A program made the position numbers and the translations under genes. This document shows, one piece after another, positions 6,005 through 33,100 of a DNA stretch of 64,000 nucleotides; within the stretch, counting starts at the first letter, position 1, and every line of letters begins with the position of its first letter. The notes beneath the pieces are model-generated. The model was not told the origin of the DNA, did no database searches, and worked only from the letters and a program-made list of their open reading frames with translations. Source of the stretch: Cyanophora paradoxa CCMP329 (lineage: Eukaryota > Plantae > Glaucophyta); assembly GCA_004431415.1 (NCBI GenBank), contig QPMI01000494.1:310001-374000 (forward strand), given 5' to 3'.

Positions 6005-7283
6005 CGCCCAGTGTTGGGCCTACTAGTAGTTCAACGGTTGGCCCGGCGCCGGCGCGGGCGCCGGCCGGGGCAGCGGCGCCGCGGCGGGGCCGCCGGGCCA
6101 CCAGGCCAAGGGTCGGAACGAAGCGAAGAATGGTCTGATTTCATAGAATACTCACTAGTACATATACAAGTAAATACGTGCCCTAATTAACGAGAGGAGG
6201 CTCCCGGGTACGTAGCGCCCCGGCTAGGGCCCGGCGGGGCCGGGCCCGGGGCCGGGGGCGGGCGGTCTTTGATCTTGGCTCTACAAAGAAGCGGGGAATG
6301 TATTTCAAAGATTTCCTAGAGCGAGGGAGGTCGGGAGAGGGGCCAGGGCCAGCCCCGGCTAGGGCCCGGCGGGGTGCGGGGCGGGGTGCGGGGCCGGGGC
6401 CGGGGCCGGGGCCGGGGGCGGGCCCCGGGAGGCGGGCGGCGCGGAGCTCGAGGCCGTCGAACAGCTCCCAGCAGGCCGCGTCGACGGCGGCGTAACTAAG
6501 GAAAGAATAACTAAGGGTATGCCCCATCGGCCCGGCGGACCTTGGCCGCCCTAATAAAATTAACTCTATATATAACCTTCACCCGTACCTAGGCCTGACA
6601 GCCTAGTTTGTTTGTGATATTTCATAGATTTCCCCCAGGCCGTCGAAGAGCTCCCAGCAGGCCGCGTCGACGGCGGCGGCGACCTCCCCGCCCCCGCCCC
6701 GCTGCTGCACCCAGTTCACCGAGGCCAGCATCTGCGGCAACGTCGACGTCAGCTGGAACAGAAGTACAGTGCTCGTCTTGTTAAAGCTCGCGAGGATGGT
6801 TAAGCTTGTCTTGCCCAACTAATAATTAAAGTGTGATTATATAACGCTTAAGCCAAAACTGAGCTAAACTCACCATGCGGTAGTCGACGGGGAGGTCGAC
6901 GGCCTTGGGGTCCGCGATCCAGACGGGGAATTTGGGGAGGCGCAGCTGGTGGTGCGCGTACTGCAGCTCGTCGTCCCCTGCCGCGCGATCAAATCTAGGG
7001 GGGGGAGGGTGGGGGGGGGTACGGACAGTTCTTGGAGGCGACGTAGGCGGGGGAGAGGAAGAAGAGGAAGGCGCGGCAGAGGTTCATCGCCTCCTGCGAG
7101 CCCTCATTGGTCGACGGAGACGATTCAGTTGGGAGGGGGGGTACATGGCGCACGCCGATCTTGGCCATCCAGCGCTGGCCGGCCTTCAGCTCGCGGTCGA
7201 CCCTGCGAGGAGCGGACGCTCAGCGGCGCAAAAAGGCGTGGCGGGGCGTGGCGGGGCGTGGCCGGGGCCGGGGGAGGGGGCGT

Positions 7284-7324
<41 letters not shown>

Positions 7325-8130
7325 CGGCGCGCCAGACAGCGAAGCCGGCGGCCTCGAGGGCGTCGGCGTACAGGAAGACGACCGCCGCGTCCGCGTGCGC
7401 GTAGCTGCGCTCGCGCTCAACGGTCGGAGGGCTCGTTTCATGAGGGCCCAGCACCTTAGGAAAAGGTCCCAGCGCTTGCCGTCGGCGGCGGCGGCGGCGG
7501 GGCCCGGGGAGCCGTGGCGGGGCGGCGGGGCGGCGGGGGCGGCCAGCGCCGCCGCCTCGGAGAGGATGCGGTGGCGGGCGCCTGCGTGGGCCACGCCCAT
7601 CTCCCGCAGCGCCCCGTCCGTTAGGGCGAGCAGCGCCGGGCCGTCCGTGTACGAAAACGCCGGCGCGAACCTGCGGCCGCGCGCTCAGGTGAGCGGGCGG
7701 GCGGCGTAGGCGTAGGCGGGTGGCGGGAGCTCTAAACTAAAGAATCGCTAAAGTATCGTACGCCCAGGTGAGCGGGCGGGCGGGCGGGCGGCGGGGGCGG
7801 CGGGGGCTGCGCGCGCACTCGGCGAGGGGTCCCCGCGAGCGGATCCACTCGACGACGTGCGCCTCCCTCCACTGCCGCACGTCCGCCTGCGGGGGGAGAG
7901 GCGGTGAGAGGGGCGGGTGGGTGGGAGGCGGGGGCCTGGGCGCACGGGGGCAGGGAGGGCGGCTCGGGAGGCTCGGGCGGCTCGGGGGCGGCGGCCGACG
8001 GCGGCGGCGGAGCGGGGGCGGTGCGGGAGGCTCGGCGGCGGGGCGGGCTCGGGGGGGGACGAGGCCGGCTCGACGAGGCGCTGCTCGCAGCTCGCGAGGG
8101 CGACCAGCAGACCCGACACGGGCCGCGCGT
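6005..8130. repeat. Segmental duplication copy A (SAM-TIR exons, introns and 3' flank)
   Basis: Closely similar to ~25795-27965, including introns and the flank gaacgaagcgaagaatggtctgatttcatagaata. Confidence 0.9.
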
Positions 8131-9820
8131 TGTCGGTCCACCTAGGAGGAGGAGGGTGAGCTAGTGGCCATATGCATGCTCGGCGTCGCGCGCGAGAGCT
8201 GCGGATGGAGGGGAGTGGATCAGGTGAAGAAGAGGGGAGGGGGCGGGGGGGGGGGGAGGGGGGGGGGGGGGGCACGGACCCGCAGGAACGCGTTGCAGAG
8301 GATGAAGGACTGCCCCGCGATGATCGCCTGCGAGGGGGGTAAGCGAAAGAAAGCAGGTGGGGTGGAGGGGCGAAGGTGGGGTACGGGCCTCGACGGCAAC
8401 GAGTATGAACGCGCCGTTCTTGCACACGAGCACCTCCGACTGGAGGCAGCGCTCGATGGGGTACGTGTTGAACGTCGGGCTGCCCGCGGGTAAGAGACGG
8501 GAGGGGAGGGGTACACCTCAAGAAAGAGATGGGGTACCTGAAGACGGGGAGCTCGAAGAGGGGTAGGGCCGCCATGCCCTTGCTGAGGAGCCAGCCACGC
8601 ATCGAGTAGTCCGAGCAGTAGTCGCCAACCGGATCATGTACTGCGAAATGATTCGGAAAGGGAAGAAGGGGGGAGTAGACGGGGGGGTACCCCAGAAGGA
8701 TAGGGATTTGACGGAGGCCGAGTCGGGTACAGGGAGACGGTGAGACTCGAAAAGAAGGTTCTTCCCCGAGCGAATGAGGTTCTGGGGGGTATCGCGCGAT
8801 TTCAGCGATTTTTGAGAACTGCCTCCGCGCGGATTCGAACCTGGAGCCCCACGGCGACCATGACCTCCTTGACGGGGGTCTGCCAGTTCTGCGGGACGGG
8901 ACGCGGTCGGCTTCGGCGGGGACGGGTACGAGGGCGGCGGGGGCGGGGCGGGGCGGACCTGCGGGCGGGGTACGATGGCGACGGCGTTGTTGTCGGGGGC
9001 GATCCAGGACGCCTCCTGCGGGGAAGAAAGATGAGCGGGAGAACAGGAAAGCAGACCATCCATAAGAAAAAGGAGGGGGGGTATCTAGTTGAAGTCGAGG
9101 CAAACCAGCCGCGGCGGGAGACGCGCAGGCGGCGGGTGATAAGGCGCCGGCCCCCTTACTCCCCGCGGCCGGCCGCCCGACGGCCAGTTCAGGACCGGCC
9201 AGGGGACAGCTGCAGCTGCAGCGCCCGGCGGGGCCGGGCTCCAGGGCTCGGCGCTGCGCGGGGGCCGGGACGACGGGCGCGGCGGGAGGTCGTCGCGGCC
9301 TGCGCGAGATCGAAAGCCGTGAGCCGCGGCGCGCCCGCCGGCGCTGAAGCTGACTGGGCGGGCGGGCGGGCGGGCGGCGTGAGGCGCCCTCGCGCCCGGC
9401 TCGGCGCGGCGAGGCGCGCTCGCGGGCGGCGAGCACGCTGCCGCGCGACACGCCGCCGCGCGAACCCCCGCTCCGGTACCGGTGCTCTCCGGCGCCCCGC
9501 GCGTGGACCAGCTCGCCCCTGCGCCGCGCGCCGGAGAAGGCGCTGAAGGCGGCCAGCGCCGGCTCCTCCCGCCGGCCGGCGCGGAGGCCGATGAATCGCT
9601 CACGGCACACGACTCAGCGGTCGGGCGCGGCAGCGATGAATCGGAGCTAAGCGTGAGCAATCGGAGTCGGCGAATGCGGAGAGAGCAGCGGTGGATCGCG
9701 GCGCGGGAGTTCCGGCGAAGTCGATCGTGAAGACGACCGACGAAAGAGACGTCCTGCAGCTGACTCGGGCAGTCAGCATTGCTCGGGCGGAGCGCAAGGG
9801 GCGAGGACGTGCGCACTGTG
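6603..9820 (-). CDS. SAM-TIR domain protein, copy 1 (unknown N-terminal exons, short BBS1 remnant, Pro-rich linker, SAM, TIR); 5' end approximate
   Basis: Spliced SAM: ADVRQWREAHVVEWIRSRGPLAE|FAPAFSYTDGPALLALTDGALREMGVAHAGARHRILSEAAAL. Spliced TIR: WDLFLS|YAHADAAVVFLYADALEAAGFAVW|VDRELKAGQRWMAKIG|EAMNLCRAFLFFLSPAYVASKNW|DDELQYAHHQLRLPKFPVWI, with the Glu at the catalytic position (6967-6969). Confidence 0.8.
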
Positions 9821-10037
9821 CATAGGGGGCCTGCACCGAAGTCCTACGAGCAAAGTCCTGCCAGATCGACTACAGATCGAAGGATTCCAATGGAAGGGCG
9901 CGATCATCGAAGTCGGAAGTCGATCCAGAGGGGTATACGTACGGATCCCCGGAAGGTCGAGCCGCTGAGCTCCGACTCGTCTCCGAGCAGATCGGGCGCG
10001 AGGGATATCGGCTGGGCTATAGCTAGCCGCAGCTTCG
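9821..10037. promoter_or_regulatory. Putative short bidirectional promoter between the SAM-TIR gene (-) and NLR1 (+)
   Basis: A minus-strand intron-like segment at 9754-9816 (GTGCGC...CTGAC...CTGCAG) lies ~220 nt from the plus-strand ATG at 10038; inferred from gene geometry only. Confidence 0.35.
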
Positions 10038-12549
10038 ATGGGCTGCGGCGCCAGCAGCGTTTGCGGGGGCGGGGGAACAGCCCCCCGGTCGCCGGAAGAG
10101 GCGGATAACGATCGAGCTGCAGCTGCCATCAGCAACAGCGGCACACGTGATGGCTCAGTTGCGGGGATCGGTGGTCCGGATCACGCGGTGTCCGCTGAAG
10201 AAGCCGCGAGCGCTGCCAAAGTCGCCGACGCAGCTGCAGCTGCAGTAGAGCAGCGCCCGAGCGGGCTCTACGGCATGTGCGGGCCCGAGGAGCTGATGGT
10301 GATCACGCGGGTCGAGTTCGTGCAGACCGCTGCGCAGCTTGCGGGCCTGCTGCGATCAGAGCGTGTGCGCGCGGCTGCGAGCAAAGATCCAGAGAAGGAA
10401 GTGCCGCCGATGCTGCCGGCGGTCGACGACCTGGCGCGGAGAGGGAACGCAGAGCAAGCGCTGCGGGAGCTCTGCCACGAAGGCGCGTATACGTACACGC
10501 GCGGTCCGGCCCCGAGCCGCGCGACCCGTGCGCAGTTCTACGAGCCTTTACGGACGACGGATCGCTCGCGTTCTCTGCGGACGTTGCGGCCCTCGTCCAC
10601 TCCGGCGACCCCGACCTCTGCCGCGCCGTGCGCTCCGCCCCGCCCCGCCCCGCGGCCGCCCCGCCCCGCGCCTCAGGCGCCGCCCGCCCGCGATCGAGCC
10701 GCGCCTCCGCCGCAGCTCGTGGACGCGCTCCTGCGGAAGGCGAGCAAGGCGATGCTGGCCGACCACGCCGTCCTCTCCGCGCTCGCCTACGTCGCGGGGC
10801 ACCTTCCCCCGGACACGCTCACCGCCTCCGACTGGGCCGCCGTCCTCAAATTCGCATCCGAGCAGGCGAGCGGCCGCGCCGCGCCGCGCCGCCCGCCGGC
10901 GCCACCTGAAGGGGCGCGAACGCGCAGGTTGAGCTGCTGAGCGTGGAGGGGCTGGAGCTGGGCCCGAGCGACGCGGAGGCGCAGGTCGCCCTCGAGCTCA
11001 CCGCCGCCGTGCTCGCCGCCTACGAGGCCGCCTCCAGCGCCGCCTCCAGCGCCCCAGCCCCCGCCGCCCCCGCCCGGCCGCCGCTGCCGCCGCCCCCGCC
11101 TCCACCCCCGCCGACCCCGCCGCTACGGTGGCGGAGGTCGGCGACGGCGCCTCTGCCGCCTCGCCGCCCGCCCCCGACACCGCCTCCACCGCACCGGCCC
11201 CCAAGGTCCGATATCACCCCTTCCCCCCCCCCCCCCCCCCCACCCCCCCCCGCCCCCGCCCCGCCCCGCCTCGTCCCCCCCTTCCCGCCCCCCCTTCACC
11301 CCCCCCCCCCCAACCACCGTTCCCCATTCCTCTCTTATTCTTGCCTCCTTCGAACTTCGCCCCCCCCTCCCTTCAATGACTCCCTGGGACCCACTCCCCC
11401 CCCCCCTCCCCACCCCCCCTCCCCCCCCGACCTCCCGAACCCTCCTCCTCCCCCCTTTTACCCTTGGTCGCCTTCCCCTCGTCACTCCCCTCCTCTTCCC
11501 CCGCCCCCCTGTACCCCCCTGCCCCCCCGCGCCGCGCGCCCTCTTCTCTCTTCCTGAAACTGGCGGTGCGCAGGGAAGCGGCTGGATGTCGACGAGAGGC
11601 GCATTGCGGCGCTGAGCGAGAAGCTGAAGCGGCTGGAGGGCCGCGCGAGGGCAAAGGGGTGGTGGCGGGCGGAGGCTGCGGCGGTGGTGGCGGGGCAGGC
11701 GCTTGCGAGCGTCCGCAGCGGCGGCGAGCGCTTCGGGGACGTCGTCCGCCGGTGCAAGGCGGCCGGTCCGACCCGTCGAGCCTCCCGCACCGTTGCCCCG
11801 CCTCAGCTTCGGCCTCGCAGGTCGGATTCTGAAGAAGCTCTACGCGGCGAGCAAGGTCATCATGGAGGGCGTCTCCTCCATGGGCGCCACGACCGTCATC
11901 GACCTCGTCTTCTGGGCCAAGGCGCGCCGCAGCCGAACCGGGGACCCTGCCGGGCTCGTCGTGGCTAGCGCTGACTGGCGGTCCGGACCGCAGGACATCA
12001 TGAGCGACGAGAAGGGGGGCATACTGGAGGCGGCGCGGGAGATGTGGAACGACGCGCGCATCGTCGTCGGCAAGGGCGCGCATCTGCAGGGCCAGAACGT
12101 CGACCCCTGGTCCGATCCGCCCTCGGTCTTGAACTCGACGAGGGTGCCGAGCTGACGGGCGGGGGCGGCGGCAGGTACGCGCGGGCGCGGCTGCTGGGGT
12201 CGCTGGCGGCGGGCGGGCAGCTGGAGGAGCTGGAGGCTCTGCTGCGGGACGGCGGTGGGGAGGGGCTCGCGGACTGCGCCTCCAGCCGCCAGCTCGCCCT
12301 CGTCCTCGCCTCCGCCCTCGTCCGCGTGCGCGCCCTCCACCCGGCCCCGGCGGACCCCGCACCCGTGGCTGCGTCCGTAACCGAGCTCTGCCGGGGCCCG
12401 GGGCAGGTGGCGGAGGGGCCGAGCCCCACCCAGGCGGCGGCGGCGGCAGGGCTGCTCGAGCGTCTCGCCAGGAAGGCGGGGGAGCTGGGCGGGGCGGACG
12501 CGGCGGAGATCGCGGCGGGGGCGCTCGCGCACGTGGCGCGGCTCGACGA

Positions 12550-12585
<36 letters not shown>

Positions 12586-15500
12586 GGCGCGGACGGCGCT
12601 CCAGCGCTTGGCGGAGTACGCCAAGCGGGAGGGGGCGAAGCTCCGGCGGCGGCGCAGGCGGCGGCCTCGGTCAGCGTGGCGGTCGGCTGCCTCGCCGGCT
12701 TCCGGCACGGGGCGGCGCGCGTCATGGAGAACGGCGTCGGGCTCGTGGAGGATGTGGCCGAGCTCGTCGCCGACGTGCCCGGCCTCGAAGGGGCGGCCGG
12801 CGTGGCCGGCGACCTCGCGGCGGCGGCGCGGCGCGCGAAGGATGGCCGCTTCGTGCAGCGCGCCCTCTCCGCCCTCGCCGCCCCCGAGCGGCTCCTGCAG
12901 CTCGCGTCCGCGCCCTCGCCCGCCGCGCCCTCGGGCCCAGCTCGGACGGCGAGGTCGGCGCCCCCGGGCAAGCTCAAGAAGGCGCCGCCCCTGCGCCCGA
13001 CGCCGATGCGGGCCAGGGTGAGGAACGGCTACCTGGGGCGCGTGCTCCAGAAATACAAAGAGGCGGTGCGCCCACAGTCGTCGACCGCCGGCACAGCCTC
13101 AACCTGCTGAGGGGCGCCGGACGCGGGGCGCGCGGGGCGGGGCAGGTGGAGGCTGCGGGGCAGGTGGTGAAGCGGGCGCACGTCCACGGGCGGGAGCAGG
13201 ACCTGGCGGACCCCGGAGTCCGCCTGCTGCTCTCCGACCTTGCCGTCGATCTCTGGTGCGCCGCCCGCCGCCCCGGCCGCCCGCCCGTCGTCCGCCCCGC
13301 CCGCTGAGCTCGGCTTGGCCGCAGCGGCTCGGCGCCTTTCCGCCGCTGCCCGGAGCTGGTGTGCGCGAGCAGGGCGTTCGTCTTCGTTGCAAGCCCCGTG
13401 ACGGCGCGGGAGGTGACATGCCTCAAGGCCCTCGACGAGGGTGCGCGGGGGCGACCCGCTCGTTTCTAGACTCGCTATTCAATTTTCTGATTTCGCCCGC
13501 GCGAGCTTCGCCTCATGGCGCCCGGGCCGCAGCGATTGAGACGGGACAAGAGGTCTTCCAGTTCTACCTGAACGGGGCGGAGAGCGTCCTCCAGGCGATG
13601 CCCGTCGGCGTCGACATGCGCCTCAGCCGCTTCGACCGCGTGCGGGCGGTCCCTCTCTGCCCTTTGACGCGAGCCGACCGAGCCCCCGCAGTGGCAGCTG
13701 GACGTGGAGGCGCTGCGGAAGGCGGACGTGTACGCCGCTGCCCGGTCGAACAAGAAGGACCCTCTGGACGTGCTTGCGAGCGGCGTGCAGAAGACGTGCC
13801 GCTTCCCCCGAGAGTACGGCAAGCCGGCGGCTGGACAGAAGCAGCTGACGACGCGCTGGTTCGGCGGGGCTGGGGGCTCGAGCTCCGGGCAGCAGCCGTG
13901 GCCGTCTGCTCCCAAGTGGGTTGTCGAGGAGTCCCTGACGGCCGAGTCCGACATTCATGCCCGCGTTTTCTTCGCTCACGCCTTGAATCCGAAGGACAGG
14001 GAGATCGTTCAAACGTTCTCCACTTCATTGCAAAGCATCGCGTCTTGCTGGTGCGCCCGTTGATGATGGATCGATCGCATGCACGCGTGAACGTCCGCGC
14101 TGCTTATCATGACGCGGCTCTGCAGGTCAGAGGCCGAGCATTGGGAGAAGGGCGAGCGCTGGGTCGACTTGGGTACGTCTTCCTTGGGGGCAGGTGTCGC
14201 GCATCGCTAACGTGGAATCCTCACCCCTGTCGCAGTGGCGCGCGCCATCCGCAACTGCACGCATTTCGTCTTCATTGTGTCACCCGCCATCGACGGCTCG
14301 CAGGTCAGTGGCCCTTAATCGATTATTCATATTAATATTGAATATCTTGATGACGTGAGCTCGCGGCTTGGCAGCATATCCAGGAGGAAGTGGCGTACGC
14401 GTGCAGCCAGGACTGCGCTCTGGTCGCCCTGTACCTCAAGCAGCAGGGGAAGGCCGTCAGGAGCTCGTGGGTGGAGGAGCGCCTGGAACGCGCCGCGCCC
14501 GGCCGCGTGCACAAAATCGATGCCGCCATCGACGTCGACCCAATAGACGCGGCACTCAAGCTTGCGAACGCTGTGAAAATTCGAACCCAAGCGATCGCGG
14601 CTCGCTCGACCGCAGCCACAGCCACATACGCAGGCGCAACCGCAGCAGGGCAGCGGGCGAGGGCCCAGGCCGGCCAGATCCAGCCAGTGCGTTGTTCCCC
14701 GACCGGCCATCCCTTGTATTTGACCCTGATCGAGCCTCGGAGGCTCGGAGAGCTGATGCGGGCGCCCAGGCAACTGCACTCGGGTGGACGGAGGCGGATG
14801 TCGAGTACTGGATCCGATCGCACGAGCCCCTCGCGCAGTGCGCCGCCTGCAGCCAGCGCCGGCCACAAATATGTATAATATATACAGTTTAACGCCGTCC
14901 GACGGTCTGTTTTTGAAGCAGATTCGCGAAGCGATTCTCCGTCTTGAAAGGAAGGGGCCTCCTCTCACTCACCGACTCGGCCCTGAAGCAGCTCGGCATC
15001 AACCATGTTGCTACGCGTAAGCGATTCCTGCTCGAGATTGCGGCCTTGTCCAAGGCCGCACTGGAGAAGTGCGACAGGAAGGTGCTCAGAAGCTTTGATC
15101 GTACAGGCGCGGCGATCTATATTATCTGACATGCTCCGTGAATTGCCTGGTCCAGCTGGAACCGCTGTGTTGGACCGAAGAGGACGTCGTGGCCTGGGTC
15201 CGCTTGCAGGGTCCCCTCGCAAAGTGCGCACCCCTGTTTTCTCGGATGCTCCACTCTCCGCTGTTGATTGGCGGGATTTACAGATTTGCCGAACTGTTCA
15301 CGTTCACCGGGGGCCCAGGACTGCTCTCACTTTCCGATGTGGATCTCGAGCGCATGGGCGTGGACAACTTCCCGGCGCGGCAGCGTCTCCTCGAAAAGAT
15401 AGCCGAGCTTGAAGCGAATGCAATCGCACAGTCACTCCACAAGAATGCCAAGCCCGAGACTGACACAGCCGCGGAGTCACGAGTTGTCGAGTTGGTGCGC

Positions 15501-23437: not shown

Positions 23438-25794
23438 GTGCGCGAGGGAGGGGGGTGGGAGTGGGAAGACGTGCGGCGAGATTATTTCAATAAAACGCTG
23501 ACCGATGAGAGCAGAATAAAGTTTTTGCGCGATACGCTTCGGGCGCCCAGAAAGCGTGGACCCTTCGAGTCGAACGGGGGGCTCTGTCTGTTCAGGAAGT
23601 CCTGGAGGGGGATGAGGCGTGGGCCCAGGGTTCCGGGCAGGCGGAATTGGTCGACGAGGATGGGACACATCCACTGCCTTTCCACTGGAATGGGCCCCTG
23701 CACGCATCTGCTGCCCTTCCAGTGCGCCCGCAACCGCCCCCATTGGACAGGCTGGGGCCGCCCCCATTTCAAGTTTGACAGAAGCGGCTGCAGGGCGGCG
23801 GGACGCTCTTTGCCATCGCCAGCCCGGCGGGCGTTTCCGTTGAGCGTGTCCCGGTGCGGCCGGCACCCTCAGCATGGCCCATAAATTCAGCATACCCTGA
23901 GCGGAAGCCCTCCGCAGGCCTTCCGCTGCACGCGGCGCATCCAGCAGACGGCAAGCCTGGAGGCTCAGGGGGCAAAGGTCCGCAGTCGCCCCCTGGCGCC
24001 AAAATCTTCCAGTCGGCCGCCCTCTCGAGCTCAGAGCCGCCATGGACGTGCCGCAGATGGATGCGGCGACGTCGATGGAGCCGCGCCTGCGTCGGCTGCT
24101 GCTGCAGCTTGGCGCCGTCAATGTCGAGGAGAGCGCCCCGCAGCCCGCCCCCGAGTAACTGGGGAGAGCTAACGTTCACTTCTCAACGGAGGCGCGGCGT
24201 CATAACTTATTTCTTTTCAGATGTATCCCTGCATATATATCCTGCAATTCAGTGTGTGTTTGCATGGCTGTTGTGATGGGCCCCTCTAGCAACATAATAA
24301 TAATAGTATGCCTTCAGCTGCAGATTCGGTTCGAATTCAATTTATTGGCCTGTGGCCAGCTGCAGTACGTATACGCGAACGCATATACTGGCCGTGGGGG
24401 AAGGAGGATGCTTTTTGTGGAATTACTTCCAAACTGCTTCCATTAAGCACTAGTACTCGCGTGATGGAGCGTGCAAGGGGCCCCAAGATTGCTTAAGTTG
24501 CCACGCGCGTATTTGTTTTTGATGAATTACCGGCCACAGTTTCAAGATCTAGACATCAGCACTGCGGGGGTTGTCCAAGGGGCACAGGGACAAAGAAACA
24601 AAATTACAAAGACAAGAGCACGAATAACGACAAGACATAGAGCCAAAATCGACAATAAAGAAGGAAAAACACAGAGACAGATCGAGAAGAGACGATAATT
24701 AAAATAAGAAACCGAGACCGAGCAGATCTAGTAACAGATCTAGATGACAATAGTACTAGAGATTCCATCAACAACTGAGGGACCGGAACTGAGGAGGTGA
24801 AGCAGGACAATGCAAAAGAGCGGATCATTAAAGCCGGCCGGCGCCGGGGCGGGCAGTCGAACTGCAAATGACGACGAACTACAGGTCCGGATCCAGCACG
24901 AGAACAAGTCCTAAAACTCGGCGAACTCCAGAACAAGAACAACTCCAGAACTCCGAACTCCGAACCAGCACGAGAACAAGCTTAAGACAAGTCCGGCACG
25001 AGAATCCGACTCGGCGAACCAGACCGAACTAAACTACAAGACGGAGATCTAGAACGCCGGTGCCGGCGGAATACGATCAGGGAAGCAGAAGACGAAGCGA
25101 GAGGCGGCGCCGGCGGTCGGGTACCAATTGCAAGAACAAGGGCCGGAGGGTCCGGCCCCGCAAACCGCCGGAGGGAACCAGAAGGAGACGCAGGCTCGGC
25201 AAGCCGGCGACGGGTGCGACCACGAGTCCGGGCAAAGATCGGGAGAGGGCCCGGGAGCAGGGCCAGGAGAAGTCAAGCCCGGCGAGAAATCTGACCCGGA
25301 ACCGGAACCCAGCGAACGGCGACGACGAAGAGGCCCCCGGAGAGCCAAGACGAGCTATCGGGCAAAGCACTGACAGCCGGAGTCAAGCAAGGCGGAGAAA
25401 GTACCCCGCACACAGGAGCCGCTAAGCAGGCGGAGAGTCCAGGGCCGAACAGGACCACAAGAGTTCAGATCTAGAGACCCAACGACGTCGATGGGGACGC
25501 GGCGGAGGCCTAGGGAATTGATGGATCTCTCGTCACGGTATTGATTGAAAATTTTAGAGGAGCAAAGAGTGTGCTTATTTGATACTGTTTAAAAATTTTG
25601 AATACTCACGCGTAGCGTAGGCGCGTAGCGCCTTGAGCTCGGCGAGATTTAGATAGGTTTTGGACCGTTTTTTGCGTGAAACACGACGTACCCCCCCGCC
25701 ACTGGCGGCCACTGAGTGGGGTGCCAGTGGGGGGGGGCCACCGACTCAGTGGGGTCGGACCGCCACTACGCCCACCCCTAGTCCCGCCCACGGC

Positions 25795-27175
25795 GCCCAG
25801 TGTTAGGCCTAGTTCAACGGTTGGCCCGGCGCCAGCGCGGGGCGCCGGCCGGGGCAGCGGCACCGCGGCGGGGCCGCCGGGCCACCAGGCCAAGGGTCTG
25901 AACGAAGCGAAGAATGGTCTGATTTCATAGAATAGTCACTAGTACACATGCAAGTTAATCCTTGCCCTAATAAAAAAGAGGAGGCTACCGGGTACGTAGC
26001 GCCCCGGCTAGGGCCCGGCGGGGCCAGGGCCGGGGCCGGGGGCGGGCCCCGGGAGGCGGGCGGCGCGGAGGCCGTCGAAGAGCTCCCAGCAGGCGGCGTC
26101 GACGGCGGCGGCGACCTCCCCGCCCCGCTGCTGCACCCAGTTCACCGAGGCCAGCATCTGTGCGCGCGCCGTCGACGTCAGCCGCAGAAGTAGTACAGTG
26201 CTCGTCTTGTTGAAGCTCGCGAGGATGGTTGAGTTTGTCGTGCCCAAGTAATAATTAAAGTGTGATTAAAAGTGCCTAAGCCAAAACTGAGCCAAACTCG
26301 CCATGCGGTAGTCGACGGGGAGGTCGACGGCCTTGGGGTCGGCGATCCAGACGGGGAACTTGGGGAGGCGCAGCTGGTGGTGCGCGTACTGCAGCTCGTC
26401 GTCGCCTGCCGCGCGATCAAATCTGTGGGGGGGGGGGGGGGGGGGGCGGGGGGGGATGGGAGGGAGTACGGACAGTTCTTGGAGGCGACGTAGGCGGGGG
26501 AGAGGAAGAAGAGGAAGGCGCAGCAGAGGTTCATCGCCTCCTGCGCGCCCTCATCGATCGACGGAGACGATTCAATTGGGGGAGGGGGTACACGGCGCAC
26601 GCCGATCTTGGCCATCCAGCGCTGGCCCGCCTTCAGCTCGCGGTCGACCCTGCCGAGAGCGGACGCTCAGCGGCGCGAGGACAACGGGGCCGGAGGGGGG
26701 AGGGGGGGGGCGCGCCAGACCGCGAAGCCAGCCGCCTCGAGGGCGTCGGCGTACAGGAAGACGACCGCCGCGTCCGCGTGCGCGTAGCTGCGAACGAAGG
26801 TGTTTGTGGGGGGAGGCAAGGGGCAAGGGGTAGCGGGCACCTCAGGAAGAGGTCCCAGCGCTTGCCGTCGGCGGCGGCGGCGGGGCCCGGGGCGCCGTGG
26901 CGGGGCGGCGGTGCGGCGGGGGAGGCCAGTGCCGCCGCCTCCGAGAGGATGCGGTGGCGGGCGCCGGCGTGGGCCACGCCCATCTCCCGCAGCGCGCCGT
27001 CCGTTAGGGCGAGCAGCGCCGGGCCGTTCGTGTACGAAAACGCCGGCGCGAACCTGCGGCCGCGCGCTCAGGTGAGCGGGCGGGCGGCGTAGGCGTAGGC
27101 GGGTGGCGGGAGCTCTAAACTAAAGAATCGCGAAAGTATCGTACGCCCAGGTGAGCGGGCGGGCGTCGTGGGCGG

Positions 27176-27208
<33 letters not shown>

Positions 27209-27965
27209 GGCGGTGCACTCGGCGAGGGGTCCCCGCGAGCGGATCCACTCGACGACGTGTGCTCCTTCCACTGCCGCACGTCCGCCTGCGGGGGGGGGGG
27301 GGGGGAGGGGAGGGGGGGGGAGCGGGCGGTGAAAAGGGCGGATGGCGGGGGCTCCGCTGGGCGCACGCACGGGGGCAGAGAGGGCGGCTTGGGCGGCTCG
27401 GGTGCGGGATGGAGGCCGGCGGCGGAGGAACGGAGGGCGGGGCGGGGGGCTCGGCGGCGGGGCGGGCTCGGGGGGTACGAGGCCGGCGGCTCGGGGGCCT
27501 CGGCTTGCGCGGGGGGCTCGGGAGGGGGCTCGGGGGCGGGAGAGGGGACCCGCGGGGAGCGGGGGCGGCTGGCAGGCGGGGCGGGGGCCCAGGGGGGTAC
27601 GGAGATGGGCCAGGCCTCGCCGTCCTCCTCCTCGTCGGGGGGCGGCTGGGCCGGCGGCTCGTCGGGGAGGGTCCGACCCAGGTCCGCGTGCCGCGAGAGG
27701 ACCTGGGTGGGGTACAGGGGTCAGAGGGGGTACATACGGGGGTACAAGAGGTACAACAGGGGTGCGCGCCTGGAGGGAAAGGGCGCCGGAGCGGTGGAGG
27801 ACGGCGAGGGCGGCTTCGGCGCGGCCGTAGCGGCCGAAGCGGAGTCCCAGAGGCGGGTCGTCGGCCCCGCCGCCGGGCCGCCCGGAATCGACGAGGCGCC
27901 GCTCGCAGTAGAGTCGGACCTCGCCGCTCGCGAGGGCGACCAGCAGGCCCCACACGGGCCGCGCG
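25795..27965. repeat. Segmental duplication copy B (SAM-TIR exons, introns and 3' flank)
   Basis: Closely similar to 6005-8130 in the same orientation; copy A lacks most of the ~27480-27890 segment. Confidence 0.9.
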
Positions 27966-29635
27966 GGCGGCGGAGCCGCCGCCGCCGCCGCCGCCCGCGG
28001 GTCATAAGCCGCCGCCGCCGCCCCGCCGCCGCCGCCGCCTTCCGGCGCGGGCACGGGTACGGGCACGGAAACCTCCATCGCCTCGAGGCACGTGACGGCC
28101 GCCGGCATCTGTAGGCTGCCCCCCGCGGGCGTCAGGGAGGGGGGTAGGCTATTAGAGAGGGATGGGGGGTACGGACGAGTAGGCGCGGGCGCCCTCGGGG
28201 CGGTACGCGTGCAGGGCGCCGCCCCTGCAGGCGGCGAAGATGAAGTCGGAGCCCGGGGCCAGCGCGAGGGCCCGGACCGGGGCGTCCAGCGCGATCGAGC
28301 CGACCAGCGCCCCGCCCTGCGCCCCCGGGCCGGCCCGCGGATCAGTCCAGGCTGCCACTTTAAGGGCGGACGGGAGGACGCGACGGTCTAGCCACTTTAG
28401 GGATCAGTATAGCTTGCCACTTAAAGGGATCAGTCTAGCTTGCCACTTCTTTAAGGGAAGGAGGGCGGGCCTTGACGATGTGGATGTGGCGGTCGCGGCA
28501 GGCGGCGGCGATGACAAATCGGCCCCCGCGGAGGGCGCCCGAAGCGCGCAGGAGGACGGGGGCGCTGGGCAGAGGCACGGCCGCCTCAGCGGAGTCGGCG
28601 TCGTCGCCCATGACGAGGAGCCCGGGGGCGTCGGAGCCGACCAGAAGGTTGGAGAGGGCGTCCTGCCGATCTTCCTCGCCCGCCTCACGCCTCACGGCCT
28701 CCATGCACGTCACTGCCAGGGCGATAAGGGGGAGGGGGGAGGGGGGAGGGGGGGGGATGAGGGGGTACGCTCGCCCTTCGGAATGCGGGTGCCGACGGCG
28801 CCGGTGCGCGCGAGGGCGTACCCCTCCCGCGCGGCCGGCTCGGCGGCTAGGAGCCCCTCCGACTTGTCGGAGAGGGGTACGCCGGCGGCCCGCAGCGCGG
28901 CCAGCCGCTCGCACGCGCGCCCGCATGCGGCCTCACCTGAGTCGCGCCCCAGCTCCGCCCACACATCCTCCTCCTGCGCGGCCGGGGGTAAGCGAGCGGC
29001 GGGGGGGTACGCGGCGGCGGGGCAGGGGGCGGACGAGGGGGTCGGCCTGCGTGGGGCGAAGCGTGAGCTTGAGGTAGGGGCGCAGGCTCCGGTAAATGAA
29101 CAGGAAGCCTCCGCTGGCGACCACAAGGAAAGGGACGCGCGGGGTCGAGGCCTCCGGGTACACCGCCGCGAGCGCCACCGGCCGCCCCAGCGCCGCGTGC
29201 CTCGCCACCAGCTCCGTCCCTGCGCGCCGCCGAGGCGTCGGGCCGGGGCGGGCCCAAGGCGGGCCGCACGCGCATGCAAGGGGGCGCACCGCGGAACAGG
29301 CGGAACGAGCTGTCTTCTCCGGCGATGGCGAGATGCACGTCGCCGTTGGAACTGAGGTCAATGAAGCACGCCTGCTGCTGCTTCGCCTTCCCGCCCGACG
29401 GCTCGCGCCACGCGCGCAGCCAGACGCTCTGCGCGCGCGGCGCGTGCTCTCAGACCACGATAAGAATCCGTAGCTAAGCGCTAGTCGACTGTTGACGTGT
29501 CCGCGTCCGTGCGGGAACTTCGTGCAAGGGGCTGCGAGCTCCCGTCGCAGCGGGCGAGAGTGCTGGACTTCGGCGGCGCAGCTAAGCGCTAAGCGGCGTA
29601 GTGCGAACCTTCGGATCCGCCATTGGATCCGCCAT
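26008..29635 (-). CDS. BBS1-like beta-propeller, Pro-rich linker, SAM, TIR fusion protein (1-nt frameshift in the SAM exon: pseudogene or sequencing error)
   Basis: BBS1-like motifs in the expected order: WLRAWREP, IDLSSNGDVHLAIAG, PFLVVASGGFLFIYRSLRPYLKLTL, EEDVWAE, DALSNLLVGSD, FVIAAACRDRHIHIVK, LLVALASGEVRLY, LRFGRYGRAEAAL, VLSRHADL...PPAQ. The open 336-nt exon 27702-27367 is in phase with the SAM exon. TIR has SKNC|DDELQYA; stop at 26008-26010. Confidence 0.8.
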
Positions 29636-30119
29636 CTTTCTGCACGGAGCCAAACACAGAAGAAGCAGCAATGATGCGTGCTTAGGGCTCCATTGCGCTG
29701 TCTTGCTATGCGCGACAGCGCCGGCTTCGGTGCCGGGCCCTGCCGGCGTAAGGTCGACGGGCAATTGAGCTGCAGCGGCAGGGCTACGGCGTTGTTCAGG
29801 CAACTTGAGCTCAAGCCCAAGCCCAGGCCACAGCTGGGGGTGACTCGGGCTCGATGGCGCGATCGACCCAAGGACGTCGACTCTCGCCGCCCAAGCGCCC
29901 AGCTGCAGCCCGCGCGTCCCCGCCCGCTCTCAGCACCAGCGCGACCCGTAGAGCAGGCGTCGCACGTCCCCGGCGGAGCGCGAGCGCCACACCGCGCGCG
30001 GGGCGCCGGCGGAGATCGATATCCAGAGGAACGCTCAGCACGTCAGCCGCGTCCCCGCCGCAGCGCCTCATCGCGTCATCGCCTCAGGCCAGCAGCGCCG
30101 GCGAGCTCTCTCCCGCAAG

Positions 30120-33100
30120 ATGGGTTTCAAGACGCCTCAGCAGGTGCGCCGTACGCGTCGGCGTCGACGACGACGTCGACGTCGCTTGCGGCTGCGCTGC
30201 ATCGCGCGCGGCGTTGGCGCGCCGGCCCCGGGCGAGGGCCGAACCTGTCCGCGTCTAGATGCCTTTAGCTGCATCGCGCACCAAGCGCGCTCATCGCGAA
30301 CCCCCGCACCGCGATTGCGCGAGCTGCAGCCTAAGCTTTAGCCTGCAACCGGATTACGACATCGGCCTGCTGCGCGCTGACTCGCTGCGCCGCGCCGCAG
30401 ATCTGGGACACAGTGGTGCAGATAGGGTACAAGAAGGCCGGCATGAAGGTCCCGCTGGCGCAGTACATTCTCCTGGGCATCGGGAGCGGCATGTTCGTCG
30501 GTGCGCGTGCGCGCCCGCGCGCCTCAAGCTCGGGCCCCGGGAGCTGCTGCTCGCCGTGGCCCAGAATCTAGCTATGCATAGCTCCCTCCCTGCTGCTTCT
30601 GACTCCGACCCCCGCTCAGGCTTCGGCGGAACCAGCGCCCTCATGGTTTCCTACGTGCGATCAAATTTGATCTAATTTGATCTAGACCTGAATTTGATCC
30701 CTCCCGCAGGGCTGGAGCACGGCGAACATGGCGGGGGACTCTCCCGCGGCCCCGGGTACCGTGAAGCTCCTTTTCGGCCTCCTCTTCCCAGTCGCGTGCG
30801 CACGCTTACGCGTACCCCTCCTCTAATCATAGTAATCCGGGTCCCGACGTCGGCGCCGGCCCGCGAGTACTAGTGCTAGTAAATATGACGTTCACCGAAG
30901 ACCCCGCCCCGCCCCGCCCCGTCCCTCCCCTGCGCGATGCACGATCCCCCACTGATATTTCATATATGTAGCTAACGACGACCGCGCCCCGCCCCTCCTC
31001 CCCCGCCTCCTCCCCCCCCGCCCCCCCCCCCCCCCCCCCCCCCGCGCCCTCCCCGCCCCCTACCACTACGGCTGACCAGCGACCCCTCCCCTCTCCCCCC
31101 TCCCCTGCCCTCCTCTCTCCCCCCCCCCCCTCCCCCTCCGCCCCCGGGCGCAGGCTGCTGCTGATCGTGGTGGCGGGGGGCGACCTCCTCACCGGCAACA
31201 TGTGCTACTGCACCGCCGCCTTCCTCCAAGTGCTAATTTATAAGCTGATGATCGCTTATAGGCTTCTAGCTTATTATTAAGTAGCTTTTAGCTTCCGCCT
31301 TTCCTCCGTAGCTTGAGTTGGAACGCGGGCCGCACCGCCGCCTTCCTTCAGATGCGGGCTTCAGCGCTAGCTACCGGTAGCCGGGCCGGGGCCCGGGGCC
31401 GGGGGCCGCGGCCCCGGCCCGGTTTTAGCCTTAGCTTGAGCCTTATAATAATTCTATGGCTATACTCAGCCTTAGCTTGAGCAGGCGCGACCGCGCCCTC
31501 TCGTTTGCAATTCTGCGCCCGCCCGCCCCGCCCCGCCGCTCGCGCCTCTAGCTTGGGCTCCCGCCTTCCGCCGGTACCCCTCCCTCCGATCCGCCGAGGG
31601 CCACGCCGTGGTGGCCGTCGGTACCCCCTCTACCGGCCAACCCCAACCCCCCCCCCCCCCTCCCCCCCACCCCACCCCCTCCCCCCTCCCCCTCCCCCTC
31701 CCTCCTCCCCCGCCCGGCGACTCGACGTGAGCTGACCTGGCCGCCTCTCTCTCTCGAACTTCCGCAGCCGCCGAAGCCGCGCCACAAGGGCCAGCGCTGG
31801 CGCTTACTCTGGGGAGGCCTCCGGTCCGTCCCTTTCAGCTTTTTATAAACTAAACAAAAACCTAGCTCTAGATCTAGATCTAGAGCAGTGAAAGCCTGCT
31901 CGATCTCGTCCGAGCTTCTCTTAATTAACAAAAGCTAACTAATACAACTTGGCTCGATAACGTTAACTACAATTGCAATTTCTGACTTCACTTCGATTCG
32001 ATCCGGGCAGGGCGTGCTCGATCACCTTCTGCACGAACTTCCTGGGCTGCGTCGCCCACGCCTACTTCATCTGCTACCTCGGGAACCTCTTCGGGGCCGA
32101 GCCCTGGAAGTCCGGCATCGCGGGCCTCGTCGAGACCAAGGCGCGCCCTCCCCTTCGCCCCTGTGCGCCGCCTAGATCTAGATGCTCTGCTGGGCTTAGG
32201 CGCTAGAGCTTAAAAGCTTGTGCTCCCGATCGAGCGAGCCCTCCGGATCCGCTGCATGCCTAGCCTGTTCCGACGCTCGATTCCTCTTCGAATTTGATCT
32301 CACCGGGCGGGGCCGGGCTTACACATGTACAGGCTGCGAAGCTGGCGTGGCACGAGATCTTCTTCCGCGGCATCGGCTGCAACTTCCTGGTCCGACCCGA
32401 CCCGCGCCTCGTCCATAGCTAGATCTTACATTAGACTCTTGAGCTAGACTTCAAGGCTTAGCAAGCCTATAATCAGCCAGCTTATAAATTTAGTATCTCA
32501 GCTTAGCTCACTCGGCCCCCCTCCCCGCGCAGGTGTGCATGGCGGTGTGGTCGACGATCGCGTCGGAGGACGCGGCCGGCAAGATCCTCTCCATCTGGTC
32601 CGCCCTGGATCCTAGCTATAGATATAGGATCCTAGATCCTATAGCTAAGTGGAAGTCCGCGGGGCCGGGTCTAAATCTGGCTCGCCTAGCTCTGGTCCGT
32701 TTAAGGTCCTTAGATCCTATTAAGGATAGGACGCGGCCGGCAAGATCCTCTCCATCTGGTCCGCCCTGGATCCTAGCTATAGATATAGGATCCTAGATCC
32801 TATAGCTAAGTGGAAGTCCGCGGGGCCGGGTCTACGTTTGGCTCGCCTGCTCTAAAATTAAATCTGATCCAATCTAAATATAATCCTGCTCGCTCTGATC
32901 TGATCTGATCCCGCTCGCAGGTTCATCATCGCCACCTTTGCCATGTCCTCCTACGAGCGTGCGCCCCGATGTATAATTTTCCTGATCAGTTAGGTCGAAT
33001 TAGATTTCATTTCGTCTGCGGCGTCTGATGAATTCGAACGATTGCGCGCGCAGACGTCGTCGCGAACGTAAGCACCTCTGATCTGATCTGATCCGATCTG

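Follow-up and report, generated by a model that had tools for sequence, protein, structure and literature searches.

Exon structure and transcript evidence

The window analysed here, a stretch of 64,000 nucleotides (64 kb) from the glaucophyte alga Cyanophora paradoxa, carries on its minus strand a gene of 15 exons (29735-25907) delimited by the joints of RNA contigs. Its 14 introns have GT or GC..AG ends and are spliced out in RNA contigs from three runs of two studies. Exon 1 (29609-29735) comprises the 5' UTR and the start ATG (29635-29633) with nine codons (MADPMADPK), an N-terminus that is identical in the public EukProt model g15010.t1; its joint to exon 2 (29428/29609) has GT..AG ends and is present in RNA contigs X4 record 6 and X6 record 11. 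Exon 2 (29290-29428, phase 0, RNA joints) opens the BBS1 propeller with the closing strand of blade 7 and with blade 1, and exon 3 (29035-29219) is the best-conserved BBS1 stretch, containing FIYRSLRPYLKLTL. The helical insertion of the propeller is encoded by exon 4 (28775-28973), which is followed by a GC-AG intron (RNA joint 28775/28712). Further blades follow in exon 5 (28471-28712), for which the RNA uses a GC donor (joint 28470/28315 in three runs) instead of the GT donor chosen by g15010.t1, where the exon is 24 nt longer. One blade is assigned to exon 6 (28177-28316) on the basis of a local BBS1 HMM and a pLDDT above 90. The last BBS1 blades, with the motifs GEVRLY and FGRYGR and a 37-aa Ala/Gly/Pro loop insert, lie in exon 7 (27770-28115), again followed by a GC-AG intron.

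Exon 8 (27371-27702, 332 nt in RNA) begins with 22 BBS1 codons (VLSRHADLGRTLPDEPPAQPPPD) and continues as a Pro/Glu-rich linker. The N-terminal half of a SAM domain is encoded by exon 9 (27219-27285, 67 nt in the window), while exon 10 (26841-27053), which shows no difference from RNA contig X1 record 1, supplies the C-terminal SAM half and, beyond a short Ala/Pro spacer, the strand that opens the TIR (KRWDLFL). Exons 11-14 (26787-26716, 26649-26601, 26540-26474 and 26405-26302, RNA joints) encode the TIR core with SPAYVASKNCDDELQYA. After a GC-AG intron, exon 15 (25907-26157; RNA contigs X1 record 1 and X6 record 7) contains the TIR end, a Gly/Pro tail, the stop codon TAG (26010-26008) and a 3' UTR reaching at least to 25907.

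The splice between exons 7 and 8 is documented by RNA contig X4 record 4, which bridges 27883-27769 to 27701-27574, and X1 record 1 runs from exon 8 through exons 9-15 into the 3' UTR. The BBS1-like and the SAM-TIR exons are thus linked through exon 8 and probably share a transcript, as the initial annotation had assumed. Independently of these contigs, g15010.t1 (774 aa) already predicts a BBS1-SAM-TIR fusion. All sequence searches described below were run with single exons or with g15010.t1; exons were joined solely for the phase count and the first stop, and no bases were inserted at frameshifts in any analysis.

The BBS1 propeller and the SAM-TIR module

A BBS1 beta-propeller, complete with all seven blades and the helical insertion, is encoded by exons 2-7 together with the 22 codons that open exon 8. 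Compared with Pfam PF14779, exons 2, 3, 4 and 5 matched profile positions 1-37 (E 0.13), 51-111 (E 3.2e-10), 107-163 (E 3.3e-3) and 177-254 (E 9.7e-8), and g15010.t1 matched the profile end to end (1-254, E 8e-39). Among the sequences of solved structures, exon 3 corresponds to residues 87-142 of Chlamydomonas BBS1 (E 1.4e-9), exon 5 to residues 213-275 of human BBS1 (E 3.5e-6) and exon 7 to residues 359-415 of Chlamydomonas BBS1 (E 1.7e-5). Exon 4, exon 6 and the start of exon 8 gave nothing useful in this sequence set when searched alone. Exon 6 alone likewise had no match in Pfam; it aligned inside the region covered by the local BBS1 HMM (7-320). The same family HMM identified the start of exon 8 as similar to the linker that follows the BBS1 propeller, and BBS1 homology ends within this exon, at residue 457 of g15010.t1 and position 403 of 575 of the HMM. 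In the AlphaFold2 model, residues 10-445 have a pLDDT above 90, helices lie at 116-172, and blades 1 and 7 are both present with high confidence. The top Foldseek match was the Chlamydomonas BBS1N structure 4v0m (TM 0.88-0.92, E 4e-30), followed by human and bovine BBS1. These exon-wise profile matches, together with the structural comparison, bear out the earlier proposal that the whole N-terminal propeller is present and collinear. Its identity to BBS1 orthologues (median 32%) lies in the range found among canonical BBS1 proteins themselves (29-42%), nine of ten near-invariant columns are retained, and the family motifs LRPYxK, GEVRxY and FGRYGR are kept.

The normal C-terminal part of BBS1, a helical region and the GAE domain, is replaced by SAM-TIR, in agreement with the initial annotation. 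The Pfam domain PF23304 (GAE_BBS1), carried by 25 relatives, was absent from g15010.t1, whose alignment to the local BBS1 HMM covers positions 7-403 of 575 and leaves 404-575 unmatched. When 28 full-length canonical BBS1 proteins were searched against the 64 kb window with tblastn, matches occurred only at 27770-29422; no GAE exons were detected in the 26 kb downstream, and no BBS1 exons elsewhere in the window. Blades 1 and 7 of BBS1 are where ARL6 binds the propeller, and the GAE domains of BBS1 and BBS9 form a dimer (PMC7018513). A protein without GAE would probably not take the usual place in the BBSome.

The SAM domain is split over exons 9 and 10. Exon 10 reached 23.8 bits (E 6e-5) against SAM_1, whose cut-off is 23 bits, and matched the ANKS6 SAM among PDB sequences (E 0.026); on g15010.t1 the SAM_1 match is partial and below the cut-off (0.0015, 19.3 bits) because this model cuts exon 9. 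Nothing SAM-like lies between exons 8 and 9, and the protein has one SAM domain. Two SAM units at 14923-15440 in the window share 42-48% identity with the SAM exon.

The SAM-TIR module is of a type associated with NAD cutting and immunity. Single exons gave weak TIR matches (TIR_2, E 0.13 on exon 13), and the read-through of exon 12, intron and exon 13 had no PDB match. On g15010.t1 the domain is clear, with TIR_2 at 1.3e-19 (residues 626-738) and TIR at 8.8e-5, so that both SAM and TIR are present as proposed at the outset. All ten language-model neighbours of the TIR were TIR_2 domains from bacterial clusters. The nearest solved sequences were a bacterial TIR-domain protein (7uxr, 4.6e-5), the TIRs of Toll-like receptors and Cat1, and SARM1 was absent among PDB sequence matches at E<=0.1. 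The Glu of the NCDDELQYA motif (E694 of g15010.t1) aligns with the conserved TIR Glu of Cat1, TLR and 7uxr. Judged by these alignments, the domain is of TIR_2 type with a catalytic-type Glu and bears the motif of TIR NADases. A single-sequence fold model of the TIR, all helices with a pLDDT of 54, was discarded as poor.

Exon 3 had 177 relatives at E<=0.001 among 1.84 billion proteins. Among the best 150 of these, none of the 149 others contained a TIR, and no orthologous fusion was found; a literature search on TIR proteins and the BBSome in Cyanophora, and on BBS1 combined with TIR, returned nothing relevant. Within this scope, the fusion is as novel as the initial annotation had supposed.

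Reading frame, a truncated second copy and alternative readings

The reading frame at the joint differs from what had been described. The initial annotation assumed an open, in-phase exon of 336 nt (27702-27367), whereas the RNA gives 332 nt (27702-27371) and the SAM-TIR exons are out of frame as assembled. The openness of exon 8 is uninformative because all three frames are open at 83% G+C. When the letters of the window are joined at the RNA junctions, translation in the BBS1 frame passes into the SAM-TIR exons out of register and meets its first stop at 25987-25985. Extra bases in the X1 RNA contig at the exon 8/9 joint (six C at the exon-8 end versus five in both genomic copies) and inside exon 9 (behind 27262, giving 68 nt versus 67 nt in the window) restore SAM-TIR to the exon-8 frame. 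With a third extra RNA base, at 27405, the frame is lost once more, unless it is compensated by a further difference within 27440-27573, a segment for which no bridging RNA or DNA contig is listed; one X6 RNA contig is without the 27405 insertion. The RNA across the exon 8/9 junction thus confirmed the splice but not the phase, as it repairs the frame only in part. The odd 5' end of the X1 contig does not derive from the second copy described below, which has substitutions and different indels there.

A/T codon-position statistics in exon 8 favour the BBS1 frame, strongly so at 27702-27607. Homopolymer deletions are a typical residual error of long-read assemblies, and the contig name tig00020902 looks like the naming of a long-read assembler. 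The frame breaks are probably homopolymer assembly errors in the window, and a continuous reading frame is likely, given single-base corrections of which the RNA supplies a part. In g15010.t1 the frame is opened by a different exon-8 donor and by cutting exon 9 to 32 nt, an exon choice that drops half of the SAM and conflicts with the RNA contig. The locus is a warning for very G+C-rich assemblies, in which single-base homopolymer errors shift frames, any frame stays open, and gene predictors respond with invented splice sites that keep the model open.

A second, 5'-truncated copy (copy B) lies on the minus strand at 6027-8140. Exons 1-6 are absent from it, and of exon 7 a remnant of 46 nt is left (8084-8129). 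The 3' part of exon 8 follows, and then the full set of SAM-TIR exons with conserved splice sites. Megablast identity to the complete gene (copy A) is 84-93%, and its exon 9 has 68 nt (ADVRQWREAHVVEWIRSRGPLA) and is in frame. The fusion is older than the duplication, because copy B keeps the exon-7 remnant beside exon 8 and SAM-TIR. The protein identity of the TIR exons is 95-100%, with six synonymous versus one non-synonymous codon differences and no indels, whereas the introns are 70-94% identical with many indels. Judging from these codon differences, purifying selection acts on the TIR exons of either copy. Copy B has no start codon of its own; ten long minus-strand ORFs at 7751-13098, considered as a source of an N-terminal domain, had no Pfam match, and there is little coding signal upstream at 8130-11800.

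We interpret the locus, with confidence and doubt about evenly balanced, as an expressed chimeric gene that most likely yields one protein of ~780-790 residues, composed of the propeller, a Pro/Glu-rich linker of ~90 residues, one SAM and a TIR_2-type TIR. An unlikely alternative is a transcribed and spliced but decaying or non-productive chimera left by a partial duplication, in which the frameshifts are real, the propeller runs out into a meaningless tail rich in Arg and Pro, and the TIR goes untranslated. The window is indeed out of frame at two places, the three RNA insertions combined still give no single frame, and the exon-8 donor has five C in copy A as well as in copy B; in addition, RNA depth is low, and the 5' end of copy B is visibly degraded, lacking the equivalents of 27488-27919 and any upstream domain. 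However, the selection on the TIR in both copies speaks against decay, and all three differences are bases missing in homopolymers, the usual error of long-read assembly. Over 756 nt the RNA is identical to copy A, and it shares the extra base of exon 9 with copy B; the A/T third-position bias of the SAM-TIR exons (6/152 A/T sites) matches that of the BBS1 exons.

We consider it rather improbable that the gene is the alga's own working BBS1 with a swapped 3' end, whose propeller would still bind ARL6-GTP at the flagellar membrane and thereby bring SAM-TIR to the cilium or place it under control there, the targeting role suggested in the initial annotation. The orthologue-like conservation of the propeller, including its near-invariant columns, speaks for this reading, as does the lack of a second Cyanophora BBS1 among the proteins searched and of GAE exons downstream. 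Yet missing from an annotation is not the same as missing from the genome, the matches inspected were the best 150 of 177, and without GAE the known pairing of BBS1 with BBS9 is lost (PMC7018513). A word search with the exon-7 protein found no second Cyanophora BBS1 within a length window of 241-768 aa, which was set by the 439-aa ORF query and just excludes the 774-aa g15010.t1; in such searches exon-sized scores fall below the reach of E<=10 against the whole library. Of 24 BBS1 matches traced to their source, none came from Cyanophora, and no other match among the BBS1 relatives listed had a Cyanophora-like amino-acid composition. Two G+C-rich candidates proved to be canonical BBS1-GAE proteins on marine or other metagenome contigs. 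The check for a separate full-length BBS1 suggested at the outset was thus negative for the proteins searched and the 64 kb window. That this is the sole Cyanophora BBS1, the subunit through which ARL6 brings the BBSome to the flagellar membrane, having lost its BBSome-anchoring GAE and gained a SAM-TIR NADase, or in a variant a bait for pathogen interference with ciliary trafficking, is an equally doubtful proposition. If true, an NAD-cleaving enzyme of death or signalling would sit at the flagellum under direct control by the binding of ARL6-GTP or ciliary cargo, and with no other BBS1 it would have to be asked how flagella manage without normal BBSome architecture.

It is more improbable still that the locus encodes two proteins, of which one would be a truncated BBS1-like propeller and the other SAM-TIR on its own, expressed from an internal promoter or by internal initiation. 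The frames differ in the window, and propeller and TIR never occur within one RNA contig of the runs examined, where depth is only ~5; on the other hand, exon 8 is spliced to both exon 7 and exon 9, in the SAM-TIR frame an ATG first appears in mid-SAM (LREMGV), and copy B also lacks a start. Finally, an assembly artefact joining unrelated genes within the low-complexity Pro-rich exon 8 is very improbable: this stretch is repetitive and G+C-rich, and its central segment is without a bridging contig, but copy B independently links the exon-7 remnant, the 3' part of exon 8 and SAM-TIR, depth across the stretch is non-zero in four of four runs, and the BBS1-frame coding signature runs on through the exon.

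Possible function and comparison with known systems

For the single chimeric protein that we favour, analogy with SARM1 and with other proteins built from a sensor, an oligomeriser and a TIR suggests that the propeller may act as a ligand-binding sensor, with an ARL6-GTP-like or another ligand. Self-association of SAM and TIR would then assemble the active site, and the TIR may cleave NAD+, causing depletion or producing signalling nucleotides. ARL6/BBSome biology would thereby be tied to NAD-based signalling, possibly for the first time.

With canonical BBS1 (4v0m, Chlamydomonas BBS1N-ARL6; human 6xt9; bovine 6vbu) the Cyanophora protein shares the complete propeller at an identity within the normal range. 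It differs from them in the low-complexity loop of 37 residues inserted in the propeller and in the loss of the last 172 of 575 family-profile positions, including GAE, in favour of the Pro-rich linker, SAM and TIR. Plant NLRs with integrated decoys likewise join a host-protein domain to a cell-death or signalling module, but g15010.t1 contains no NB-ARC, NACHT or LRR by Pfam. A decoy role as in plant NLRs needs a separate genuine copy of the target; the idea of a decoy or guard for pathogen attack on the BBSome, put forward in the initial annotation, is so far unsupported, because no second Cyanophora BBS1 was found among the proteins searched. The bacterial and plant TIR NADases (7uxr, Thoeris ThsB, Cat1 and plant TIR-only proteins) resemble the Cyanophora TIR in the TIR_2 type and in the S..Y..S.(W)C..EL motif with its Glu, with the Trp of the WC motif being Asn in Cyanophora. 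The Cyanophora TIR differs from these in being eukaryotic, in its spread over six exons and in its fusion with SAM and a BBS1 propeller.

SARM1, TIR-1 and dSarm are animal NADases with the architecture ARM-SAM-SAM-TIR, in which the two tandem SAMs form an octamer ring. The likeness to SARM1 proposed in the initial annotation holds loosely, for the order of the parts: the Cyanophora protein has a BBS1 propeller in place of the autoinhibitory ARM repeats, one SAM instead of a tandem pair, and a TIR whose nearest solved sequences are 7uxr, TLR and Cat1. Cell-death and immune signalling repeatedly employ the combination of a sensor, an oligomeriser and a TIR, in bacteria as well as in plants and animals. 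In this glaucophyte alga, the propeller of a conserved ciliary trafficking protein occupies the sensor position, a natural case for testing whether nearly any binding domain can be coupled to a TIR enzyme. As in SARM1, an N-terminal protein-binding or regulatory domain precedes a SAM oligomeriser and a C-terminal TIR with a catalytic-type Glu.

Domains and exons of the BBS1-SAM-TIR gene

Three-frame translation of the minus strand between 26 and 30 kb, a region of 72-75% G+C, gave BBS1 pieces from about 29430 to 27770, followed by a Pro/Glu-rich stretch and by SAM- and TIR-like pieces up to a TAG at 26010-26008. Contigs of four public sequencing runs were aligned to positions 24900-30500 (5,601 letters), and ambiguous contig cuts were moved to legal splice sites before exon coordinates were fixed. 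The contigs of three runs, which stem from two studies and are labelled only as guessed RNA, skip 14 introns of 53-180 nt, all with GT..AG or GC..AG ends, and therefore represent spliced RNA; those of the fourth run are colinear DNA. The RNA contigs define a minus-strand gene, termed copy A, whose exon 1 (29735-29609) holds the ATG at 29635 and is followed by exons 2 (29428-29290), 3 (29219-29035), 4 (28973-28775), 5 (28712-28471), 6 (28316-28177), 7 (28115-27770), 8 (27702-27371), 9 (27285-27219), 10 (27053-26841), 11 (26787-26716), 12 (26649-26601), 13 (26540-26474), 14 (26405-26302) and 15 (26157-25907). GC donors are used in five of the 14 introns (first intron bases 28774, 28470, 27769, 26715 and 26301, minus strand). 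The summed contig depth of the DNA run X8 reached about 5000 at 25087-25273, in a high-copy repeat that lies shortly downstream of the gene, and about 4100 at 27144-27330, covering the poly-C/G tract of intron 9, compared to about 20 nearby.

A HMMER search with exon 3 among 1.84 billion representative proteins returned 177 relatives at E<=0.001. The top relative was a 100%-identical protein of 774 residues, EukProt EP00741_Cyanophora_paradoxa_P015549 (gene tig00020902_g15010.t1, hereafter P0001), itself a predicted BBS1-SAM-TIR fusion with Pfam matches to BBS1 (8e-39, residues 12-264), TIR_2 (1.3e-19, residues 626-738), TIR (8.8e-5) and, partially and under the 23-bit cut-off, SAM_1 (0.0015, 19.3 bits). 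P0001 was used as a stand-in in protein-level searches and for folding.

In an exon-sized Pfam scan, exons 2 to 5 matched the PF14779 (BBS1) profile at positions 1-37 (E 0.13), 51-111 (E 3.2e-10), 107-163 (E 3.3e-3) and 177-254 (E 9.7e-8), respectively. A search of solved-structure sequences placed exon 3 on residues 87-142 of Chlamydomonas BBS1 (E 1.4e-9), exon 5 on residues 213-275 of human BBS1 (E 3.5e-6) and exon 7 on residues 359-415 of Chlamydomonas BBS1 (E 1.7e-5), where the crystallised propeller construct ends. The AlphaFold model, for which an alignment of relatives was the input, has a pLDDT >90 over residues 10-445, and it best matches Chlamydomonas BBS1N of the complex with ARL6 (TM 0.88-0.92, E 4e-30), followed by human and bovine BBS1, with generic WD40 proteins far behind. 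The median identity of the propeller to canonical BBS1 is 32%, compared to 29-42% among the canonical proteins themselves; judged by sequence, its divergence is not unusual. A GGC/GCC-rich stretch in exon 7 (27961-28074) accounts for an insert of 37 residues, Gly/Ala/Pro in composition, within a loop of the propeller (P0001 residues 337-371), which is not present in other BBS1 proteins and is modelled with lower confidence.

A local BBS1 family HMM of 575 positions, built from full-length relatives, covered P0001 residues 8-334 and 372-457 with its positions 7-403; past position 403 it gave no alignment. The homology reaches 22 codons into exon 8 (VLSRHADLGRTLPDEPPAQPPPD versus iLkRtAeleas...gpppe of the HMM), which places the break inside this exon; it lies near 27635, and the codon signal weakens there too. 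The last 172 HMM positions, among them the GAE domain PF23304, are absent from P0001, and tblastn of 28 full-length BBS1 proteins against the whole window gave matches at 27770-29422 only, each ending about 200 residues before the C-terminus. Both the collinearity with the BBS1 N-terminal propeller and the presence of SAM-TIR in place of the normal C-terminal region, as proposed in the initial annotation, are borne out. Given that ARL6-GTP contacts propeller blades 1 and 7 of BBS1 in the bovine BBSome structure and that the GAE domains of BBS1 and BBS9 dimerise (PMC7018513), the fusion retains the ARL6-binding part and lacks the BBSome-anchoring part.

Reading frame across exons 8 and 9

The initial annotation had described an open, in-phase exon of 336 nt (27702-27367) as the bridge between the BBS1 and SAM-TIR parts. 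This had to be abandoned: the RNA donor of exon 8 lies at 27370, resulting in a length of 332 nt, and because all three frames are open at 83% G+C, the open frame is no evidence. Taking the assembly letters as they stand, with no bases inserted, and joining them at the RNA splice sites, we obtain a BBS1 frame that is unbroken from exon 1 through exon 8. Beyond this point it enters exons 9-15 out of frame, giving an Arg/Pro-rich translation that ends with a stop at 25987-25985. Codon statistics leave no doubt as to which SAM-TIR frame is the true one; A/T letters shun the third codon position in these exons (6 of 152 sites), as in the BBS1 exons. In exon 8, this measure supports continuation of the BBS1 frame, strongly at 27702-27607 and more weakly beyond. 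Joining the two frames would require one additional base inside exon 9 and another at the exon 8 end or close to it.

An RNA contig of run X1, otherwise identical to the copy A locus over 756 nt, carries an extra base between 27371 and 27285 (C5 to C6) and another behind 27262 (A to AA). The second of these gives exon 9 the reading ADVRQWKEAHVVEWIRSRGPLAE, which is a proper SAM start (W-x4-V-x2-W-I/L), and a length of 68 nt in the X1 contig, equal to that in copy B, a 5'-truncated SAM-TIR paralog located elsewhere in the window. The X1 contig contains a third additional base at 27405 that is missing from a contig of run X6 and shifts the frame again unless compensated further upstream. All three differences (27262, 27371, 27405) are bases missing from homopolymers of the assembly. 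Homopolymer deletions are a typical residual error of long-read assemblies, and the contig name tig00020902 presumably follows the naming of a long-read assembler. The three sites are probably consensus errors left over from long reads in DNA of very high G+C content, and errors of this kind may affect many gene models of the Cyanophora genome. P0001 has a GT donor for exon 5 that lies 24 nt beyond the GC donor of the RNA (28447-28470). Its exon 8 donor at 27366 (..SLPPC), the one also chosen in the initial annotation, differs from the RNA over 27367-27370, and its exon 9 is cut to 32 nt (ADVRQWKEHTS/FAPAF), which deletes half of the SAM domain and differs from the RNA over 27219-27253. These exon 8 and exon 9 junctions look like a detour of the predictor around single-base frame errors.

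Since the RNA contig supplies the needed extra bases, all in homopolymers of a long-read-style assembly, copy A likely encodes an in-frame BBS1-SAM-TIR fusion. A chimera that is transcribed yet frameshifted, as the assembly letters read and as the base at 27405 would leave it if uncompensated, is unlikely.

Origin and integrity of the locus

Among the best 150 of the 177 exon-3 relatives, PF14779 is present in 149 and GAE_BBS1 in 25, and a TIR occurs in P0001 only. The literature yielded no BBS1-TIR protein, and nothing on Cyanophora TIR or BBSome genes, in agreement with the earlier impression that a BBS1-SAM-TIR protein had not been described before. Exon-7 word searches of proteins of 241-768 aa gave no second Cyanophora BBS1, none of the 24 relatives whose source was looked up came from Cyanophora, and no other match had the Gly/Ala/Arg/Pro-rich composition of this alga. 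Two G+C-rich candidates were rejected, both located on metagenome contigs, and the one with neighbouring gene calls is a canonical BBS1-GAE gene. By these indirect checks a second BBS1 is absent from the public protein sets, which says nothing of the genome; the finding gains considerably in interest if Cyanophora has no other BBS1. That copy A is the alga's own BBS1, rewired, appears rather improbable to us.

The possibility that the locus makes two separate proteins was judged very unlikely. X4 record 4, a contig of 243 nt with 0 differences, links 27883-27769 to 27701-27574 and thus connects the final BBS1 exon with the Pro-rich one. X1 record 1 (895 nt) starts in the 3' UTR, crosses all TIR and SAM exons as well as exon 9, and ends within exon 8 at about 27439. 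Exon 8 is consequently spliced on both sides, to BBS1 at one end and to SAM-TIR at the other; no single contig of the four runs covers both the propeller and the SAM-TIR halves, and no listed contig bridges 27440-27573. The claimed continuation of BBS1 into the SAM-TIR exons holds for splicing but not for the frame as assembled.

A mis-join of the assembly is barely credible, as the junction occurs twice, in copy A and in copy B (6027-8140, minus strand). The latter has the full set of SAM-TIR exons, with splice sites conserved, and their translations share 95-100% identity with copy A. Between the TIR exons of the two copies there are six synonymous codon differences, one non-synonymous difference and no indels; intron identity is 70-94%, and intron indels are many. 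This pattern demonstrates purifying selection on the TIR frame. Copy B lacks exons 1-6. From BBS1 exon 7 it retains a 46-nt remnant (8084-8129, corresponding to 27920-27965) that reads ..GLLVALAS.., and from exon 8 the 3' part. Because these pieces lie upstream of SAM-TIR, copy B descends from a BBS1-SAM-TIR ancestor, and the fusion predates the duplication. Neither a recognisable domain nor a start codon was found upstream of copy B. Intron 14 begins with GT in copy B versus GC in copy A. Compared to copy A, copy B also has a 373-nt insertion in the last exon region (6264-6636), and the end of its TIR-tail coding sequence (..AAVDAACWELFDGL..) is duplicated (6731-6636 and 6491-6390). Several stretches at 11820-13290 (minus strand) show a coding-like third-position signal with no Pfam match in long ORFs; a gene so far overlooked may lie here, between copy B and the adjacent NLR-like gene.

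The SAM-TIR part and its known counterparts

Exon 10 matches SAM_1 of Pfam with 23.8 bits, above the cut-off of 23, and the SAM exon of copy A is 42-48% identical to SAM units at 14923-15440 of the window. Among solved-structure sequences, P0001 residues 545-774 match the bacterial TIR-domain protein 7uxr (E 4.6e-5) as well as Toll-like receptor TIRs and the CRISPR-associated TIR Cat1. In the alignments with 7uxr, TLR and Cat1, the Glu of ..SPAYVASKNCDDELQYA.. aligns with the conserved Glu of the (W)C..EL motif. A fold of the TIR from its single sequence was discarded as a poor model.

The simplest reading is that copy A is one more member of an algal sensor-SAM-TIR family, with a sensor taken from BBS1. 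Binding of a ligand to the propeller would control both the assembly driven by SAM and TIR and the cleavage of NAD+. The data establish which domains are present, how they are ordered, how the gene is spliced and that the TIR is under selection; an uninterrupted frame, the enzymatic activity and the biological purpose are inferred. The likeness to SARM1 suggested in the initial annotation extends to the sensor-SAM-TIR layout, but not to membership: SARM1 was absent among the solved-structure matches of P0001 residues 545-774, and copy A has one SAM, not two.
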